64,000 bases of DNA from Macrostomum lignano. Lineage: Eukaryota. Location: positions 248,001 to 312,000 of the forward strand of contig NIVC01000459.1 of assembly GCA_002269645.1 (NCBI GenBank), in the 5' to 3' direction. Numbering within the stretch: the stretch's first letter is position 1; each line of letters opens with the position of its first letter. A program made the position numbers and the translations under genes. This document shows positions 4,761-27,723 of the stretch, in pieces. The notes under the pieces are model-generated. The model saw only the letters and a program-made list of their open reading frames with translations, had not been told where the DNA came from and did no database searches.

Positions 4761-5312
4761 TCTCAGTCCCAGTCTCAGTCCCAGTTATCTCCCGTCTCCC
4801 ATATCATGATAGTCCAGAGGAATTCGTCAATCTGGAGTCAAATTTCAGACCTGTTCTTTGGGATAAATTTCCTCATTTTTGCCTTATAAAAGAAAGGAAA
4901 ATTGTGTTTTTTTCAGAAATGTCAACAGTGTCATTAATGTTCGCGTCGCGGCTTGAGCTTGGCTTTGTTTCCAATTGCATTTCTCCTGCTTTCGAAAATT
5001 ACCCCCACCGGCTGGTGGTGCCCTAGCAACTGACTCGCACCTGCGTGACACATATTTAGCAATGACCCATCCGAAAATTGCTAGATAGATTGCCTACTTC
5101 AGTTCATAATCGGCTGAAAGGAAAAGTCAAGGCATTATGAAAAAACTGATAGTCATCTCGAATGCATATTTATGGCATCGAGGCCGCTGATCTGATAAGC
5201 TCGTGTTGGTGAAGGGTATTGTTTGGTTGCCTTGGTGAAGTGCACCCTGCTATGCAGCAATTGTGCTGGCAATTAATGGCCACCTGGTTTGAATGATCTG
5301 CCAGCAACACTG

Positions 5313-6298
5313 CATCCTCTCCCATCCTCTCCCATCCCCTCCCACCCTCTCCCATCCTCTCCCATCCTCTCCCATCCTCTCCCATCCTCTCCCATCCCTC
5401 CCACCCTCTCTCACCCTTTCCAACCCTATCCCACCCTCTCCCACCCTCTCCCACCCTCTCCCATCCTCTCCCACCCTCTCCCACCCTCTCCCACCCTCTC
5501 CCACCCTTTCCAACCCTCTCCCATCCTCTCCCATCCTCTCCCATCCCCTCCCACCCTCTCCCACCCTTTCCAACCCTCTCCCATCCTCTCCAATCCTCTC
5601 CCATCCTCTCCCATCCTCTCCCACCCTTTCCAACCCTCTCCCATCCTCTCCAATCCTCTCCCATCCTCTCCCATCCTCTCCCACCCTCTCCCACCCTCTC
5701 CCACCCTCTCCCACCCTTTCCAACCCTCTCTCATCCTCTCCCATCCTCTCCCATCCCCTCCCACCCTCTCCCACCCTTTCCAACCCTCTCCCATCCTCTC
5801 CCATCCTCTCCCATCCCCTCCCACCCTCTCCCACCCTTTCCAACCCTCTCCCATCCTCTCCAATCCTCTCCCATCCTCTCCCATCCTCTCCCACCCTTTC
5901 CAACCCTCTCCCATCCTCTCCAATCCTCTCCCATCCTCTCCCATCCTCTCCCACCCTCTCCCACCCTCTCCCACCCTCTCCCACCCTTTCCAACCCTCTC
6001 TCATCCTCTCCCATCCTCTCCCATCCCCTCCCACCCTCTCCCACCCTTTCCAACCCTCTCCCATCCTCTCCCATCCTCTCCCATCCCCTCCCACCCTCTC
6101 CCACCCTTTCCAACCCTCTCCCATCCTCTCCAATCCTCTCCCATCCTCTCCCATCCTCTCCCACCCTTTCCAACCCTCTCCCATCCTCTCCAATCCTCTC
6201 CCATCCTCTCCCATCCTCTCCCACCCTCTCCCACCCTATCCCACCCTCTCCAACCCTCTCACACCCTCTCGCACCCTCTCCCACCCTCTCCCACCCTA
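5313..6298. repeat. 10-bp minisatellite CCA(T/C)CCTCTC with higher-order blocks
   Basis: About 98 decamers; source of the stop-free ORFs on both strands. Confidence 0.95.
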
Positions 6299-6994
6299 AC
6301 CAAATTAGACTGAGTGTGAATCCGAAATGACGAAAGGAATAAAAAATATAGAAAAATTCTGACCAGCGGGAAACGGCACGGACTGCACCGGCACCTCGAG
6401 TTCTCTGTCTGGTAATTAGCTCAGCACAGCCCTCCCTGGCTCAATAAATACAAAAAGGATTTTCTCATGACAAGTTCCGACAACGGTTTTAGTCCGGCTA
6501 ATTAACAAGATGGAAAGACGGGGTGCTCAAATTTTCTCACCTTCTCTTCTCCGAAGGATTCGAGCCCGGACCCCGCTTTGCTGCAAAATATGAGAAGATT
6601 TATCCTATTCTGCTTGACAGCTTCATCCTCTGAGTGGGGAACTGAAGGCGTCTTTAGGCTAAAGAGGCTGAGGGTCCAGCACTCTCCGCCTGTCTGTAAT
6701 CAGGAAGTCAGCAGAAAATTCTTGCCTGAATGTCTCTCTCACCTCTCTCTACCCCATCTTTCCGTTCCGGGAGACAGCTGGCCCAGCCCGCTAGCACGGA
6801 TTTATACAGATTTAATTTCTGATGCAGCCGCAGTTAAATCCGTCACCTGCCAGGGACCTTTGCGTAGCCGAACTGGACTGGAATCGGACTTCGCACTCAA
6901 CAACAAGATTTATCATTACAGGCTGCTCTGGGTTCCTTAATTCCTACAGAAATATGAAAAAGTAAGTTAAGCTTTTTCATGGATCAACAACTTG

Positions 6995-14751: not shown

Positions 14752-18713
<3,962 letters not shown>

Positions 18714-19296: not shown

Positions 19297-19448
<152 letters not shown>

Positions 19449-20538: not shown

Positions 20539-23500
20539 TTAGAAGGGCTTGTATCCTTTGCGCTTTCCTCTGCTAGTTCGCAGGGCGATGCAGGCAAACA
20601 GAACCGCCAACGCTAGCAGCAGAACGAACAGCACAATCAGGCAGATGAACAGAGGCAGTGGCACCGCCCAGATCAGGCCTTCGGTGGGACTGCTGGCCGA
20701 CTGCAGGATCATGTAGCCCAGCGGCCAGGCCAACTTGTTGTCAGTTCGGGTCTGCGGGGATTTGAGAGACATATTGGGGATTCATAAGCCTTGCAAAAAT
20801 CATAACATTATTTATCGTTCAGGTGATTACCACAGCTTTGCCTTCTGTTCGGTACGTTGGGATCTGAAAAAATTGAATGCGATGGCAATGGATTTTGAGA
20901 GAAATTAATGTTTAAGGGTCTTCCTGTCCTCAACTCTCACCTCCAGAATTTCCTCAACTCTCACCTCCACAATGTCCTCAACTCTCACCTCCACAATGTC
21001 CTCAACTCTCACCTCCACAATGTCCTCAACTCTCACCTCCACAATGTCCTCAACTCTCACCTCCACAATGTCCTCAACTCTCACCTCCACAATGTCCTCA
21101 ACTCTCACCTCCACAATGTCCTCAACTCTCACCTCCACAGTGTCCCTCAACTCTCACCTCCACAATGTCCTCAACTCTCACCTCCACAATGTCCTCAACT
21201 CTCACCTCCACAATGTCCTCAACTCTCACCTCCACAATGTCCCTCAACTCTCACCTCCACAATGTCCTCAACTCTCACCTCCACAATGTCCTCAACTCTC
21301 ACCTCCACAATGTCCTCAACTCTCACCTCCACAATGTCCTCAACTCTCACCTCCACAATGTCCTCAACTCTCACCTCCACAATGTCCTCAACTCTCACCT
21401 CCACAATGTCCTCAACTCTCACCTCCACAATGTCCTCAACTCTCACCTCCACAATGTCCTCAACTCTCACCTCCACAATGTCCTCAACTCTCACCTCAAC
21501 AATGTCATCAACTCTCACCTCCACAATGTCCTCAACTCTCACCTCCACAATGTCCTCAACTCCCACCTCAACAATGTCATCAACTCTCACCTCCAGAATG
21601 TCCTCAACTCTCACCTCCACAATGTCCTCAACTCTCACCTCCACAATGTCCTCAACTCTCACCTCCACAATGTCCTCAACTCTCACCTCCACAATGTCCT
21701 CAACTCTCACCTCAACAATGTCATCAACTCTCACCTCCACAATGTCCTCAACTCTCACCTCCACAATGTCCTCAACTCCCACCTCAACAATGTCATCAAC
21801 TCTCACCTCCAGAATGTCCTCTACTCTTTTCTTCTACGTCTTCTACGATTCCAATTTCATCAACCCCAATGTCCTTAATCAGTCCTCACCTTATCAAGAA
21901 ACTCAATATTGCTCCAGTTGGAGTCGTTGAATCCCAGTCCCCGCAGGAGGCTCTCCACGAAGATGCCATCAAAGCAGAGCCACCTCAGCCTGGCCTCGGA
22001 CACGCTGCCCGATGGTCGATACGACCGGCTGCAGAAGCTGTCCACCAGGATGGACACCTCGGTGAGGTTGGCGCTGGGCCGGCTGGCCGCCCGACGGTTT
22101 GCCGTCAAATTGAAGAAATCGGCGACGTGATAGAAGCCGGAGAAGGCGACAAATTTACCGACTGGGTCGGGCTGGTAGACATTGTTGAAGGAGCAGCTGG
22201 TTTGGTTGCACAGCGAGTTGAAGAACCTGGCGGCCAGCAGGCGGCAGCGGGAGGCGTCGCCGCTGCCGGAGACGAGGAAGCGGGCATCCACCTTTGCGGC
22301 CGGCACGGTGAACAGGCCGTCCGAGCAGGGGGGGACGAACACCTCGCTGGCGCGTACCTGCGGTGTGGGTGTGTGGCATTGGTGTGGTATTGGTGTGGTA
22401 TTGGGGTGGTATGGTGTGGCATTGGGGTAGTATGGTGTGGTATTGGTGTGGTATTGCTGTGGCATTGGGGTGGTATTGGTGTGGCATTGGGGTGGTATTG
22501 GTGTGGTATTGGTGTGGTATTGGTGTGGTATTGGTGTGGTATTGGTGTGGCATTGGGGTAGTATGGTGTGGTATTGATGTGGTATGGTGTGGCATTGGGG
22601 TGGTATGGTGTGGCATTGGGGTGGTATGGTGTGGTATTGGTGTGGCATTGGGGTGGTATTGGTGTGGCATTTGGGTGGTATTGGCGTGGCATTGGAGTGG
22701 TATGGTGTGGTATTGGTGTGGTATGGTGTGGCATTGGGGTAGTATGGCGTGGTATTGGTGTGGCATTGGGGTGGTATTGGTGTGGTATGGTGTAGCATGG
22801 TGTGGTATTGGTGTGGTATTGATGTGGTATTGGTGCGGCATTGTGTGGTATTGGTGTGGTATTGGTGTGGCATGGTGTGGTATTGGTGTGGTATTGGTGT
22901 GGTATTGGTGTGGTATTGGTGTGGTATTGATGTGGTATGGTGTGGTATGGTGTGGTATTGGTGTGGCATTGTGTGGTATTGGTGTGGTATTGGTGTGGTA
23001 TGGTGTGGTATTGGTGTGGTATTGGTGTGGTATTGGTGTGGTATTGATGTGGTATTGATGTGGCATGGTGTGGCATGGTGTGGTATTGGTGTGGTATTGA
23101 TGTGGCATGGTGTGGTATTGGTGTGGCATGGTGTGGTATTAGTGTGGTATTGGTATTGCATGGTGTGGTATTGGTGAGGCATAGGTATAGGGATGGGTTA
23201 TGAGAATACCCTGGGGACCAGGGATGGCACGGGATACCGGAGCTCCTGTCGCACCTTGTCCGAGTAACCCAGCTGCCAGCAGGGAAAATCCACAGGTTTG
23301 CCATCGTCATATCCTGCGTCGGCGATGGCCCGGCCGATGGCTCGCCGCTGGGCCGCGCCGAGTCCGTAGCAGCCGAAGCTGTGCGCGTAGACCCGCCTGG
23401 TGCGGCCATAGACAGTCAGCGGTCGCGTGTCCGGCGAGTCGGGCGGCGAGTCCGGCGGCGATTCGAAGGCGACCTGGACGCTGCCGTCGCCAAGGTCGAG

Positions 23501-25017
23501 GCTCCCGAAGGTTGCTGGCAGATCCGGCGGCGGATTGGCGGTCGAACCGGCGTTCTGCGCCGCCTCCCGCGCAGGCAGGTCGCCGAATCCGCCTTTAAGG
23601 AAGTTGACGGCCAGCCAGCCGGCGCGCGCCTCCTCGTCACCTTCAAGGATGCGCACGCCGCCGACTTCAAAGTGGAAGCCGCCGCTGCCGCCCGGCCGCA
23701 GAATTTTTCGAGCATCCGAGAGAACGGCTTCAGCTTTAGAGGCGTTCACGGATCTGAGAGCAGGGGGGGGGGGCGTTTGGGTGGCGGTGGGTGGAACTGC
23801 TGAGAACTGAGATCGATTCGGTCACACAGTTGGCAGTCGGTCACACAGCTCAGCAATCGGTCACACAGCCCAGTAATCGGTCACACAGCTCAGCAATGGG
23901 TCACAAAGCCCAGAAATCAGTCACACAACTCAGCAGTCAGACACAGCTCAGCCATCGGTCAAACAGCTCATCAGCCTCACCTGTACATCCTCATCCCGGC
24001 AGTGGCGCCCAGATACAGTTTGGTTTGCTTCTCAAGTTTCTCTGGCACCGCCGGTCTCACGGCGCTGACGGCCTCTCGCATTTGACTCAGGCCTCCGGCC
24101 ACTTGTATAGGGAGCGCTGAAAGTAAGAAAATGAATATGATAAATCAAAATGATGATGAACAAGGCAAAGTCACTTCGGCTTGAGATCAAACACTTAAGG
24201 CTCGAGATCTCTTACAAGTGTGGGCGGTGGCCTTCTGGAGCACCACTCCGTTGCCGCGGTACTTGCTTGAGCGCCAAGCGTAGATGTAGGCCTTCGTGGA
24301 GTGCGCGCCCGCGTCCACGATGACCCCGAACTGTGGGAAGACAGCGCAAGAGTCAGATACGTTTATCGCTGGCATGCCCTGCCCCAAGATGACCCTCCCA
24401 AACAGACAGATAAATCCAGAGAGTCTTACAGTCACAGCCGGCCGACTCAAGGTGAGGTGCACAACAACCAGGACGATGAGTCCAATAGCTCCGATGGCGA
24501 GCGCCAGAGCTGCCAGAATCCACCAGGTGGACAGGGCCGGCGGCGGCACCTTCGGCAGGTCCGGTGGAGGTGGCGGTGGATCTGCGAGGTGGGGATAATG
24601 GGATTTGGGAAGTCACGGTAACAGTCTGGATGTCCAGTACAGCATGTCTGCAAGCTGGGGGACTGCATGGGATCTGCACCAACTGCAGCATGTCTGCAAG
24701 CTGAGGGACTGCATCTGATCAGCACCCGACATCGCCCCAAGCAAGTCACATGGACAGCGCGACTCACTCTTATTATAGGCAAAGATGGTCTCGCCATCAG
24801 TCAAGCCGGATTCGGCGATGGTCTTCGCCAAGTCCAGCTCAGGATTAGCGGCGTTCCTGCGCAATGCAAACGTTTCCTTGCGTTTAACCCGCTTCTCAGT
24901 GCAAAACTCGTCCAACAACCAGTCCAGTGTCCGGTCCGCCGTGGTCTGCACGTGCACCCGACCGAATATCTCGTCATTGTCGAGGTCGCACTTCACCGTG
25001 ATGGTTATAATACTCAT
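20539..25017 (-). CDS. GDA1/CD39-family NTPDase (apyrase) with two TM anchors and an N-terminal ubiquitin-like domain, about 610 aa
   Basis: Exons 25017-24768, 24581-24430, 24330-24216, 24116-23981, 23753-23255, 22357-21890 and 20751-20539, all GT-AG, phase-consistent, 1833 nt. ACR1 VDAGAHST, ACR2 LGATAGMR, ACR3 GDEEARAGW, ACR4 DLGDGSVQ, ACR5 AWPLGYM. TM helices near both ends, as in CD39. Confidence 0.92.
20927..21822. repeat. 24-bp minisatellite CTCAACTCTCACCTCCACAATGTC, in last NTPDase intron
   Basis: About 37 tandem copies. Confidence 0.95.
22365..23175. repeat. Degenerate GTGTGGTATTG minisatellite, in NTPDase intron
   Basis: Tandem 10-11-bp units filling intron 22358-23254. Confidence 0.93.
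23815..23975. repeat. Short degenerate 20-bp repeat GGTCACACAGCTCAGCAATC, in NTPDase intron
   Basis: About 7-8 diverged copies. Confidence 0.7.
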
Positions 25018-26084
25018 GATTGCCGAGCGATCTCAACTTTAACGATAGCGGGTTTCAATCCAAGCCAGACGGGGGGCCATGGATCGCACTCGGACAGGAG
25101 CAGCTACGAAACAAGTGCACGCTTCGTGGATCCACCCAAGCTGTAGGGCGACTGCAGTTAAAGGCTCAGAACGAGAGCAATATTCTTTCTCGCTGCAAAC
25201 TATGCCAGATGTTTCAAACCGAAGCTCTCGACTGGGCCCACCGCATGGCTGAGGCCTTGCTGCGCCGATATCTGGCAAAAATCCACACGATTCAGAGAGG
25301 AAAAAACGATTTTTGTATGATAGCCAGGCTCGCTTTGCACAGATAACAGCGCGCTCCGAGTTAGCGCAAAAGCAGTCAAGTTATATTAATCTACACTTGA
25401 CTTCCGTCTCTCTCTCTCTTCAGCCCTCCAGGCCACTGCAGTCAGGCAGGCAGTATTTTTCAATCGATAACATTGATTGATTTCTGCGCCAAAGCGAGAG
25501 AGAGAGAGAGAGAGAAGAGGAGAGCACCACAGAGCAGCCCGCGTCATTGTCTCTCTCTCCCCTAGCAATGCCGCCCACAAAATCCACTCTCTCATGTCCG
25601 TTCACGGTGGTTCGGTCTCGGGCAAAACTGCATGGCATAGTCAATAGCTCCGTAGCAATTATTAGTAATAATTGTCCATATGGAGCAATAGAAGGCCGCA
25701 CCCAAGAGATACGCTCTGCTGCTGCTTGTAGTTAATTAAAAAATTATTTAAGTCGCCGCTGAACTGCGAGCAGTGCATGGTTACAACTTACTAATGCAAG
25801 TAGTATAGTCCAAAACTGGAATTGTAAAAAACTCTTAAGTGTATATTTTCCTTAATTTGGATAAACAACAGTTGAGACTGTAGATTCATTTTAATATCGA
25901 GTTCGCACGTTTTAGTATTCAGAAGGCATGAATTCACCAATTGAAACAAAGACATTCAGTCTGGAGCCGCATATATTTGATTCAGCAGATGTGCCAGCAC
26001 TAGAGGCAAATAAAATGCAAAACAGTTCGCGTCTCTTGAGACTAAGCAGCTGATGTAACCGCAACCTCCAGCTGAATCTGCCTC

Positions 26085-26735
26085 AGCATCCTTCATCTGA
26101 GTCTGCATTCGCATCAGCATCCTTCATCTGAGTCTGCATTCTCATCAGCATCCTTCATCTGAGTCTGCCTCATCAGCATCCTTCATCTGAATCTGCATTC
26201 TCATCAGCATCCTTCATCTGAGTCTGCATTCTCATCAGCATCCTTCATCTGATTCTGCATTCTCATCAGCATCCTTCATCTGAGTCTGCATTCTCATCAG
26301 CATCCTTCATCTGAGTCTGCATTCTCATCAGCATCCTTCATCTGAGTCTGCATTCTCATCAGCATCCTTCATCTGAATCTATATCCTCATCAGTATCCTT
26401 AATCTGCATCAGCATCCTTCATCTAAATCCGCATCAGCATCCTTCATCTAAATCTTCATCCGCATCAGCATCCTTCATCTGAATCTACATTCCCTTCAAC
26501 ATCCTTGATCTAAATCTACATTCCCTTCAACATCCTTCATCTGAATCTACATCCGCATCAACATCCTTTATCTGAATCTACATCCTCATCAGCATCCTTT
26601 ATCTGAATCTACATACTCATCACTATCCTTCATCCGCATCAGCATCCTTTATCTAAATCTACGTCCACATCAACATCCTTCATATGAATCTACATCCGCA
26701 TCAACATCCTTCATCTGAATCTACATCCGCATCAT
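26085..26735. repeat. About 31-bp minisatellite GCATCCTTCATCTGAGTCTGCATTCTCATCA, downstream of the LicD-like stop
   Basis: Tandem copies, more degenerate towards the coding end. Confidence 0.9.
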
Positions 26736-27723
26736 CATTCTTCATCTGGATCGTCTTCATCAGCATCAGCGCTCCCATTAACATCCGCAGACTCCGCATC
26801 GGCCCCAGCAGAGTCGGCCCAGCGGGCAGCCGCGCCAGGAATCTGAGTTCTCAGCTCAGGCGGAATTTTAACGTACAGTCCAGTAGACGAGTCGTACATG
26901 GCGTCGCGCCCCAGGTAGCCGTACTCGACAGTCAGGTAGGCCAGCAGGTCCCTAGGCGCAAAAGTTGGTACAGACTCAAAGGTGCAGGGCACAGCTGGGA
27001 AGAGACAGTCCGCAGGGAATCGCTTGTCCATGCAGTCGTAGATGCCAGGTACGGACCAGTTGACGCGCAACGAGCCGTTTGGATCCAGCGGATGCGGCGA
27101 CACGGTGAACACGTCCAGGTGCACCAGGCAGGGATCGAAGGGAAACCGCTTAGGCCCGCAGTTGAGACCAACGGCTGCCCAACCGGCCTCGGTGAGGCTG
27201 AACTTCACCCGCTTGCATCCCCGACCAGCGTAGGGGATCTCAACAGTCGAACCGGACTCGAACCACGGCTTACCGCTCAGACTGCAGCTGGCATCGAATG
27301 CGATATGAGCAGCGCCCGGCTCGGCCGCCGTCAACCGGTTGCCAATAGCAACCAGACGGGCAAAGTCGACCTCGCGGACAACCAGATCGATATCGGAGTC
27401 GTGCGGAATCATCCGGCCGGACTCGCGTGCACAGCCAGGGCGCTGCCGCCGTACAGGGCGTACTCAACCCCGGCCGACTCTAGCTCGGACTTGACCCTGG
27501 CGAACAGCGCCAGACGAGCCGGCCGGAACAGGCGGGCTCGCCGGACAGACTTGGCATAGTTGGCCGGCCGACAGTCGCCCCACATGTTAAGGCTGATCGA
27601 GCTGGCGGTTCGGTGCTTCCGCTGCCCGCCGCTGGCGTCGTCATCGTCGAACCACAGCGGCAGCAGCTGGCACAGACTCGCTGTTGGTGACTCGCTCTGG
27701 AGCTCCTCCTCGCCTGCGCTCAT
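26735..27723 (-). CDS. Single-exon LicD/fukutin-like nucleotidyltransferase-fold protein, about 329 aa after repairing a 1-nt frameshift at ~27427
   Basis: ORFs 27723-27409 and 27412-26735 join on adding one C (CAC-[C]GC-GAG) to give GVEYALYGGSALAVHRESGRMIPHDSDIDL, matching the LicD motif YxLxxGTLLGAVRxxxxIPWDxDIDI. Later VHLDVF and YLTVEYG segments are also LicD-like. Confidence 0.75.

Follow-up and report, generated by a model that had tools for sequence, protein, structure and literature searches.

The window analysed here, a 64,000-nucleotide stretch of Macrostomum lignano contig NIVC01000459.1, carries on its minus strand a seven-exon gene for an ecto-nucleoside triphosphate diphosphohydrolase (NTPDase) of the CD39 type. 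Its first exon encodes what appears to be a ubiquitin-like (Ubl) domain, followed by a hexaproline linker, a first transmembrane segment (TM1) and the NTPDase proper. Ecto-NTPDases set the levels of extracellular ATP and ADP, and in parasitic flatworms the tegument enzymes are implicated in host interaction. From inside, the cell can reach these enzymes only by their short cytosolic tails. On such a tail, a folded Ubl would newly couple a purinergic ecto-enzyme to cytosolic machinery and, because M. lignano is a transgenic model that is tractable by RNA interference, this coupling is testable. The layout had been proposed in an initial annotation of the sequence, and it is borne out here and found again in a second M. 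lignano gene. We consider the architecture of Ubl, hexaproline linker, TM1 and CD39-type NTPDase to be real, and the explanation as a whole, in which the Ubl would serve as a cytosolic interaction module, to be probable (probability about 0.72).

Structure of the gene

Translation of the minus strand from 24300 to 25400 matches the initial annotation exactly. All seven exons are bounded by GT-AG introns and are in frame, giving a coding sequence of 1833 nt and a protein of 610 aa. In the following list, and throughout, ACR stands for apyrase conserved region and a slash marks an exon boundary. Paralogue B is the second M. lignano gene of this type, with its locus at L001, and L002 is an environmental contig carrying a homologous first exon.

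24768 to 25017, minus strand: exon 1, with the start codon, residues 1-83 and the first base of codon 84; putative divergent beta-grasp Ubl (translation, AlphaFold2, Foldseek, homologous exons)
24582 to 24767, minus strand: intron 1, 186 nt, GTGAGT...GCAG, phase 1 (position and phase match paralogue B, L001 6258-6894; donor GTGAGTC in L002)
24430 to 24581, minus strand: exon 2, with the rest of N84, the hexaproline (24579-24562), a proline-rich linker and TM1 (about 24525-24454, residues ~103-126) (translation, hydropathy)
24216 to 24330, minus strand: exon 3, with ACR1 VIVDAGAHST, non-canonical at A143 (alignment)
23981 to 24116, minus strand: exon 4, with ACR2 LYLGATAGMR (alignment)
23255 to 23753, minus strand: exon 5, with ACR3 EGDEEARAGW and the non-canonical ACR4 DLGDGSVQ (alignment)
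21890 to 22357, minus strand: exon 6, cysteine-rich C-terminal lobe of the ectodomain (junction SDK/VRASEVF aligns with TAT/VRATDVF of paralogue B)
20539 to 20751, minus strand: exon 7, with ACR5 LAWPLGYMI, the second transmembrane segment (TM2, residues ~572-596), a short basic tail and the stop codon (translation, hydropathy)

The start codon of exon 1 (250 nt) is the ATG at 25017-25015, with in-frame stops 7 and 9 codons 5' of it. Its product begins MSIITITVKC...GLTDGETIFAYNK, and the full product of its 83 codons is MSIITITVKCDLDNDEIFGRVHVQTTADRTLDWLLDEFCTEKRVKRKETFALRRNAANPELDLAKTIAESGLTDGETIFAYNK. The donor A/GTGAGT and the acceptor TCGCAG/AT at 24581 are joined in phase 1, as described in the initial annotation, and yield the codon AAT (N84). 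The product of exon 2 is PPPPPPDLPKVPPPALST, followed by the hydrophobic helix WWILAALALAIGAIGLIVLVVVHL (residues ~103-126). It contains no Met and, when its frame is read upstream into intron 1, a stop is met 13 codons before the acceptor with no intervening ATG; exon 2 was thus correctly described as lacking a start codon of its own. The donor of exon 2, ACT/GTAAGA at 24430, is in phase 0, and the product of exon 3 starts with FGVIVDAGAHST, the ACR1 of NTPDases.

Introns 6, 5 and 4 consist mostly of tandem arrays (20925-21827, 24-bp x37.5; 22371-23176, 11-bp x75; 23818-23970, 20-bp x7.8). These produce open reading frames (ORFs) of 200-500 aa on either strand, all of them spurious rather than true genes. 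At 25018-25031, 14 nt 5' of the ATG, there is an AG acceptor, ttgag/ATCGCTCGGCAATC. It is used as a cis-acceptor in the UniProt model P0002 and could be a candidate spliced-leader trans-splice site of the NTPDase gene. Upstream on the same strand is a LicD-family ORF (26735-27412, minus strand; Pfam E 5.4e-6). Between this and the Ubl exon is a 31/62/93-bp tandem array (26072-26768), which overlaps the 3' end of the LicD ORF.

The NTPDase and its catalytic motifs

Residues 133-563 match Pfam GDA1_CD39 (PF01150) with an E-value of 1.3e-52 and 179.4 bits against a cut-off of 24.9, covering profile positions 8-416 of 423. Kyte-Doolittle hydropathy peaks at residues ~99-134 and 563-601, with the transmembrane segments at ~103-126 and ~572-596. 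All six N-glycosylation sequons (N-x-S/T) and eight of the 12 cysteines fall between the two segments, which is the layout of the cell-surface NTPDases. Outside Macrostomum, the best matches of the full-length protein are ENTPD2/3 and the flatworm tegument-type enzymes. By these sequence features the product is an ecto-NTPDase of the cell-surface type (NTPDase1/2/3/8-like), encoded by a genuine M. lignano gene.

The protein shares terminal transmembrane helices, a glycosylated cysteine-rich ectodomain and ACR1-5, of which ACR1 and ACR4 are atypical, with the vertebrate cell-surface NTPDases (CD39/ENTPD1, ENTPD2, ENTPD3 and ENTPD8) and with the SmATPDase1-type enzymes of schistosomes. Its identity to vertebrate ENTPD2/3 and the parasitic flatworm homologues is 29-32%. 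It differs from the vertebrate NTPDases in lacking their first conserved cysteine pair. The N-tails also differ: that of M. lignano would be a folded beta-grasp domain of ~80 residues with a hexaproline linker, whereas the vertebrate tails have about 10-20 residues and those of tapeworm and schistosome NTPDases 55-110 residues with no domain match. The statement in the initial annotation that CD39/GDA1 proteins have only short cytosolic N-tails therefore holds for the vertebrate enzymes but not for the parasitic flatworm homologues.

The window paralogue also departs from the known cell-surface NTPDases in two catalytic loops. ACR2, ACR3 (E258/E259) and ACR5 are present. Compared with the canonical loops (ACR1, DAGS[ST]x[ST]; ACR4, DLGG[AG]S[TV]Q; catalytic Glu in ACR3), ACR1 (residues 140-146) reads DAGAHST, with A143 at the position where all ten other aligned NTPDases carry Ser. 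ACR4 (residues 304-311) reads DLGDGSVQ rather than DLGGASTQ, with D307, G308 and V310 in place of the consensus GAT. Both loops are canonical in paralogue B (PAA48824.1). Given these atypical sequences, the activity of the window copy may be altered or reduced.

The N-terminal domain

An AlphaFold2 model of the N-terminal domain, built from a two-sequence alignment, has a mean pLDDT of 70.4 and contains strands at residues 3-12 and 15-24, a helix at 31-41, a strand at 50-52, a helix at 63-70 and a strand at 76-82, the order expected of a ubiquitin-like fold. When this model was compared with the PDB using Foldseek, all 50 best matches were ubiquitin-like or beta-grasp domains. These include SUMO2 (8oi3_C, E 1.6e-4), archaeal ubiquitin, the second SUMO-like domain (SLD2) of Rad60 (3rcz_A), the UBL domains of Ddi2, Get5 and HOIL-1, ISG15, UFM1, the Ras-binding domain (RBD) of ELMO, PI3K, toluene monooxygenase subunit B and EccD3 (6sgz_E, 6sgw_B). 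Foldseek gives probabilities of 0.82-1.00, with 49 of the 50 at 0.98 or above; TM-scores span 0.39-0.68 across the fifty and lie at 0.6-0.68 among the closest. A model of the whole paralogue B protein shows the equivalent Ubl elements at lower confidence; residues 84-100 then form a disordered proline-rich linker and residues 101-129 a long TM1 helix. On this modelling, which agrees with the fold proposed in the initial annotation, the N-terminal 83 residues are a highly divergent beta-grasp (ubiquitin-fold) domain of ~80 residues.

Sequence profiles point the same way at sub-threshold scores. Pfam Rad60-SLD (PF11976) aligns residues 5-78 with profile positions 2-68 of 72 (E 0.0015, 18.7 bits, below the gathering cut-off of 23.8), and YukD (PF08817) matches the window Ubl with an E-value of 0.002 and 19.3 bits, below its cut-off of 27. 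The Ubl of paralogue B independently gives near-full-length sub-threshold matches to both families (YukD E 0.0015), and the YukD scores of the two proteins are 19-20 bits. The motif LDxxKTLxExGLxDGxxI, which had been put forward as a signature of the fold, is not diagnostic, with both families below their cut-offs and the profile comparison with ubiquitin insignificant. As modelled, SUMO-like, ubiquitin-like, RBD-like and YukD-like subclasses are not told apart by these data.

A C-terminal di-Gly is absent, as had been noted: the window domain ends in ...ETIFAYNKN and runs into PPPPPP, and that of paralogue B reads ...VIYAFDSD-PPPPPP. Since it also continues directly into the rest of the protein, the domain is an integral (type-2) Ubl and not a cleavable or conjugatable modifier. 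The first strand (ITVKCDL) and the start of the second (GRVH) are invariant in three Ubl sequences that are ~50% identical, which suggests a constrained surface. L52 is likewise invariant in the three homologues. With regard to an exposed hydrophobic patch of the Leu8-Ile44-Val70 type, as in Ubls that bind the proteasome, UIM or UBA receptors, hand alignment of the third strand is ambiguous as to the outward residue (F50, A51 or L52).

A paralogue with the same architecture

Paralogue B (PAA81568.1, PAA48824.1) is 42% identical overall to the window protein and has the same order of Ubl, PPPPPP, TM1, NTPDase and TM2. At its locus exon 1 ends in G/GTGAGG and exon 2 starts CTGCAG/AT CCG CCG, so that intron 1 interrupts the same codon position in the same phase 1 as in the window gene. 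The second intron is in phase 0, again at the position seen in the window gene. The GenBank annotation of the M. lignano assembly was made from StringTie/TACO assemblies of RNA-seq transcripts with TransDecoder ORFs (PMC5730564), and the paralogue B models are therefore transcript-derived. No transcript contigs encoding PAA48824.1 or PAA81568.1 were found; both were located on the genome assembly only. Upstream of paralogue B there is no LicD gene within 6 kb, so that what is conserved as a unit is the Ubl together with the NTPDase.

Between two copies of paralogue B, exon 1 differs at four sites, all of them third-position and synonymous. Nei-Gojobori dN/dS is ~0.34 for the window exon against L001 and ~0.28 against L002, with dS near saturation. 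The Ubl is 49% identical between the paralogues and the ectodomain 43%. These comparisons indicate purifying selection on the Ubl, whose conservation equals or exceeds that of the catalytic domain, and place the fusion before the split of the two 42%-identical paralogue groups.

Distribution of the Ubl

An exhaustive hidden Markov model (HMM) search of 1.84 billion representatives returned eight matches, of which the genuine ones are the M. lignano proteins and a 54-aa fragment, P0017. Four others (P0015, P0016, P0018 and P0019) were rejected as long repeat proteins (PASTA-like, HA-domain-like and low-complexity), whose scores are summed from weak matches to 'GLxDGxxI'. P0017 is encoded on L002, a 1257-bp contig of an ENA metagenome (ERZ27264081, k141_1422588), which contains the whole homologous exon at 829-1079: MTSPNVITVTVKCDLDLDEIYGRVHL...GLGDGDLIYCNK. 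This exon is ~50% identical and has the donor A/GTGAGTC in the phase of the window exon, and the contig stops short of the downstream exons. It is frameshifted at CATTTATACGACG, which could be either the mark of a pseudogene or an assembly error. An exon that recurs with boundary and phase unchanged, both in a 42%-identical paralogue and in an environmental sequence, is beyond chance.

A scan of JGI metagenomes with the three-sequence Ubl alignment gave 231 pattern matches, none of which was confirmed, and a domain search of the N-tails of parasitic flatworm NTPDases gave no match. A word-index search with the N-terminal 134 aa found no matches, but here the index missed a true one, as the full-length query retrieved UniProt A0A1I8HB62, which has an identical N-terminus. 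Within the reach of these searches, which looked for relatives of this particular Ubl, the module is restricted to Macrostomum-like flatworms.

Database models and novelty of the architecture

UniProt holds two independent models of the window gene, A0A1I8HB62 and A0A1I8G7Q2, in which identical exons are joined with the Ubl exon first. A0A1I8G7Q2 is named 'Ectonucleoside triphosphate diphosphohydrolase 1'. A0A1I8HB62, which has a PF01150 match, is automatically named 'Ubiquitin-like domain-containing protein', which implies a match to a more permissive signature; this may be the PROSITE Ubl profile. Both differ from the present model at junctions only. A0A1I8HB62 loses ACR1 at the exon 2/3 junction, where it reads '...HLTLIRGHRGRGAHST'. 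Both models take another exon-5 donor, giving 'CWQLGTRQRGVRPPC' against the paralogue-supported 'CWQLGYSDKVRASEVFVPPC', a discrepancy that may reflect a difference in the length of a C-run in the older assembly. At the present exon 5/6 junction GYSDK/VRASEVFVPP aligns residue for residue with DYTAT/VRATDVFQRP of the paralogue.

No paper was found that joins NTPDase or CD39 with a ubiquitin-like domain, joins Macrostomum with NTPDase, or cites the gene identifiers. The initial annotation had called the architecture previously undescribed. This stands for the literature but not for the databases, since the automatic name of A0A1I8HB62 means that it is already catalogued by machine. What is new is a CD39-type NTPDase with an added integral Ubl. 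Its reach is limited: Ubl relatives were found in M. lignano and one environmental contig only, integral membrane-tethered Ubls are known, and the UniProt annotation already shows the architecture. For now, the gain in practice is a gene model put right and a domain delimited well enough to be tested. The fusion is clean and lineage-specific, in a tractable model animal, and is no new principle.

Possible role of the Ubl

A conserved hexaproline-containing linker of ~20 residues tethers the Ubl to TM1, and the absence of a signal peptide together with homology to the topology of CD39 would place it at the N-terminus facing the cytosol. There it could act as a protein-protein interaction module that sets the destination or lifetime of the enzyme (trafficking, anchoring or turnover), or that modulates TM1 and hence activity. 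The hexaproline may serve as a rigid spacer or else be bound by proline-recognition domains. We infer a partner-binding role by analogy with the membrane-tethered Ubls of Herp and TMUB1 and with the integral SUMO-like domains of Rad60.

HERPUD1 (Herp) and TMUB1/TMUB2 likewise have a non-cleavable Ubl, without a functional di-Gly, at the cytosolic face of the membrane beside transmembrane segments. The Ubls of Herp and TMUB proteins recruit partners linked to endoplasmic reticulum-associated degradation, p97 or the proteasome. Unlike the M. lignano protein they are not known to have a lumenal or extracellular enzyme domain, and there is no detectable sequence relationship. The SUMO-like domains (SLDs) of Rad60/NIP45 (PF11976), together with SUMO, provide the best Pfam match and the top structural matches, and the Rad60 SLDs are also integral and non-conjugatable; the Rad60/NIP45 proteins, however, are soluble and nuclear, and the M. 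lignano domain scores below their cut-off. In YukD/EccD of type VII secretion (PF08817), EccD has a cytosolic N-terminal Ubl followed by transmembrane helices, and this family gives both sub-threshold Pfam matches and, through EccD3, Foldseek matches. In contrast to the M. lignano protein it is a bacterial family, and with scores under the 27-bit cut-off the resemblance is most likely at the level of the fold only.

Could the Ubl, being permanently attached, imitate a ubiquitin or SUMO tag that is built genetically into the cytosolic tail of a surface enzyme? If so, it would constitutively engage ubiquitin or SUMO readers, such as ESCRT and multivesicular body sorting to extracellular vesicles, endocytic adaptors, or p97 and proteasome shuttles. 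Extracellular nucleotide hydrolysis would be set by Ubl-dependent trafficking and turnover rather than by regulated ubiquitination, and the atypical window paralogue might be mainly a nucleotide-binding or scaffolding partner. We regard a tag mimic as unlikely, and the coupling to the proteasome, p97 or trafficking adaptors suggested in the initial annotation is speculation.

Alternative explanations

Several points weigh against the reading proposed here. The transcript-derived GenBank protein set does not contain the window gene, and in an old UniProt model, P0004, the upstream LicD-like gene is joined directly to exon 2 with the Ubl exon left out. Little weight is given to that model, which has frameshifted stretches throughout. 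No Pfam ubiquitin-family model reaches its cut-off and PF00240 is not reported, while in hhalign the match to ubiquitin covers 17 columns at an insignificant E of 0.11, and PDB sequence searches, with the single sequence and with a profile, gave no significant match. Confidence in the fold model is only moderate, being based on two aligned sequences. Catalytic competence of the window paralogue is uncertain from its non-canonical ACR1 and ACR4. Does the Ubl exon, then, belong to the NTPDase mRNA? Or is it a separate small gene, an upstream ORF or a part of the LicD-like gene, with the NTPDase made without it? A gene-model artefact of this kind would fit the chimeric models, as P0002, which has many frameshifted stretches, fuses LicD, Ubl and NTPDase, and P0004 skips the Ubl exon. 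It would also fit the polycistronic precursors resolved by trans-splicing that occur in M. lignano (PMC5730564), and the model at the window locus is drawn from the genomic sequence. Yet exon 1 is required, because otherwise no start codon lies 5' of TM1 and ACR1: the ORF that remains has its first Met in exon 4, past both. The spliced leader of M. lignano finishes with an ATG (PMC8629364), but on the exon 2 acceptor this leader would give ATG/ATC CAC..., which is in the wrong frame and meets a stop inside exon 2. The same is true of paralogue B, and a Ubl-less isoform made by trans-splicing onto exon 2 was rejected for both genes. Moreover, a stand-alone exon-1 ORF would continue into intron 1, where the paralogues have unrelated sequence, and paralogue B, with transcript-derived models, has the Ubl exon in the same place and phase although no LicD gene lies within 6 kb upstream. 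An artefact is accordingly very unlikely.

If the fused architecture is real, the domain could still be a beta-grasp module that mimics neither ubiquitin nor SUMO. It might be Ras-binding, RA-like or PB1-like, binding a small GTPase or a kinase, or it might be a structural or oligomerisation module that restrains TM1 and tunes catalysis. CD39 activity is regulated by the mobility of its transmembrane helices, which would suit a structural module, and the ELMO Ras-binding domains, PI3K, toluene monooxygenase subunit B and EccD are among the Foldseek top 50 at similar scores, with no significant sequence match to ubiquitin or SUMO. The best structural and Pfam scores nevertheless belong to SUMO, the Rad60 SLD and UBL domains, in data that barely separate the beta-grasp subclasses, and we think a module of this other kind unlikely. 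A neutral or decaying lineage-specific appendage, with the window copy a degenerating paralogue, is highly improbable. The unusual ACR1 (A143) and ACR4 (D307, G308, V310), the frameshift in the Ubl exon of L002 and the very narrow distribution of the Ubl are what decay would predict; but the ORFs are intact in every M. lignano copy, dN/dS is well below 1 with only synonymous differences between the copies of paralogue B, the Ubl is no less conserved than the catalytic domain, and the beta-1 and beta-2 stretches are invariant in the three homologues.

Other features of the window

Downstream of the NTPDase gene, on the opposite strand, is an ORF for a ZIP zinc transporter (17053-18180, plus strand; Pfam E 2.6e-38). 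A 14-bp x48 tandem array (16479-17150) reaches into its 5' end, and an (AGAC)38 microsatellite is present at 19298-19448. Between 4001 and 8000 there is very strong GC skew (-0.53 to -0.54 in 2-kb windows) and long overlapping ORFs are found on both strands (5250-6330), which suggests that this is another repeat-rich block.

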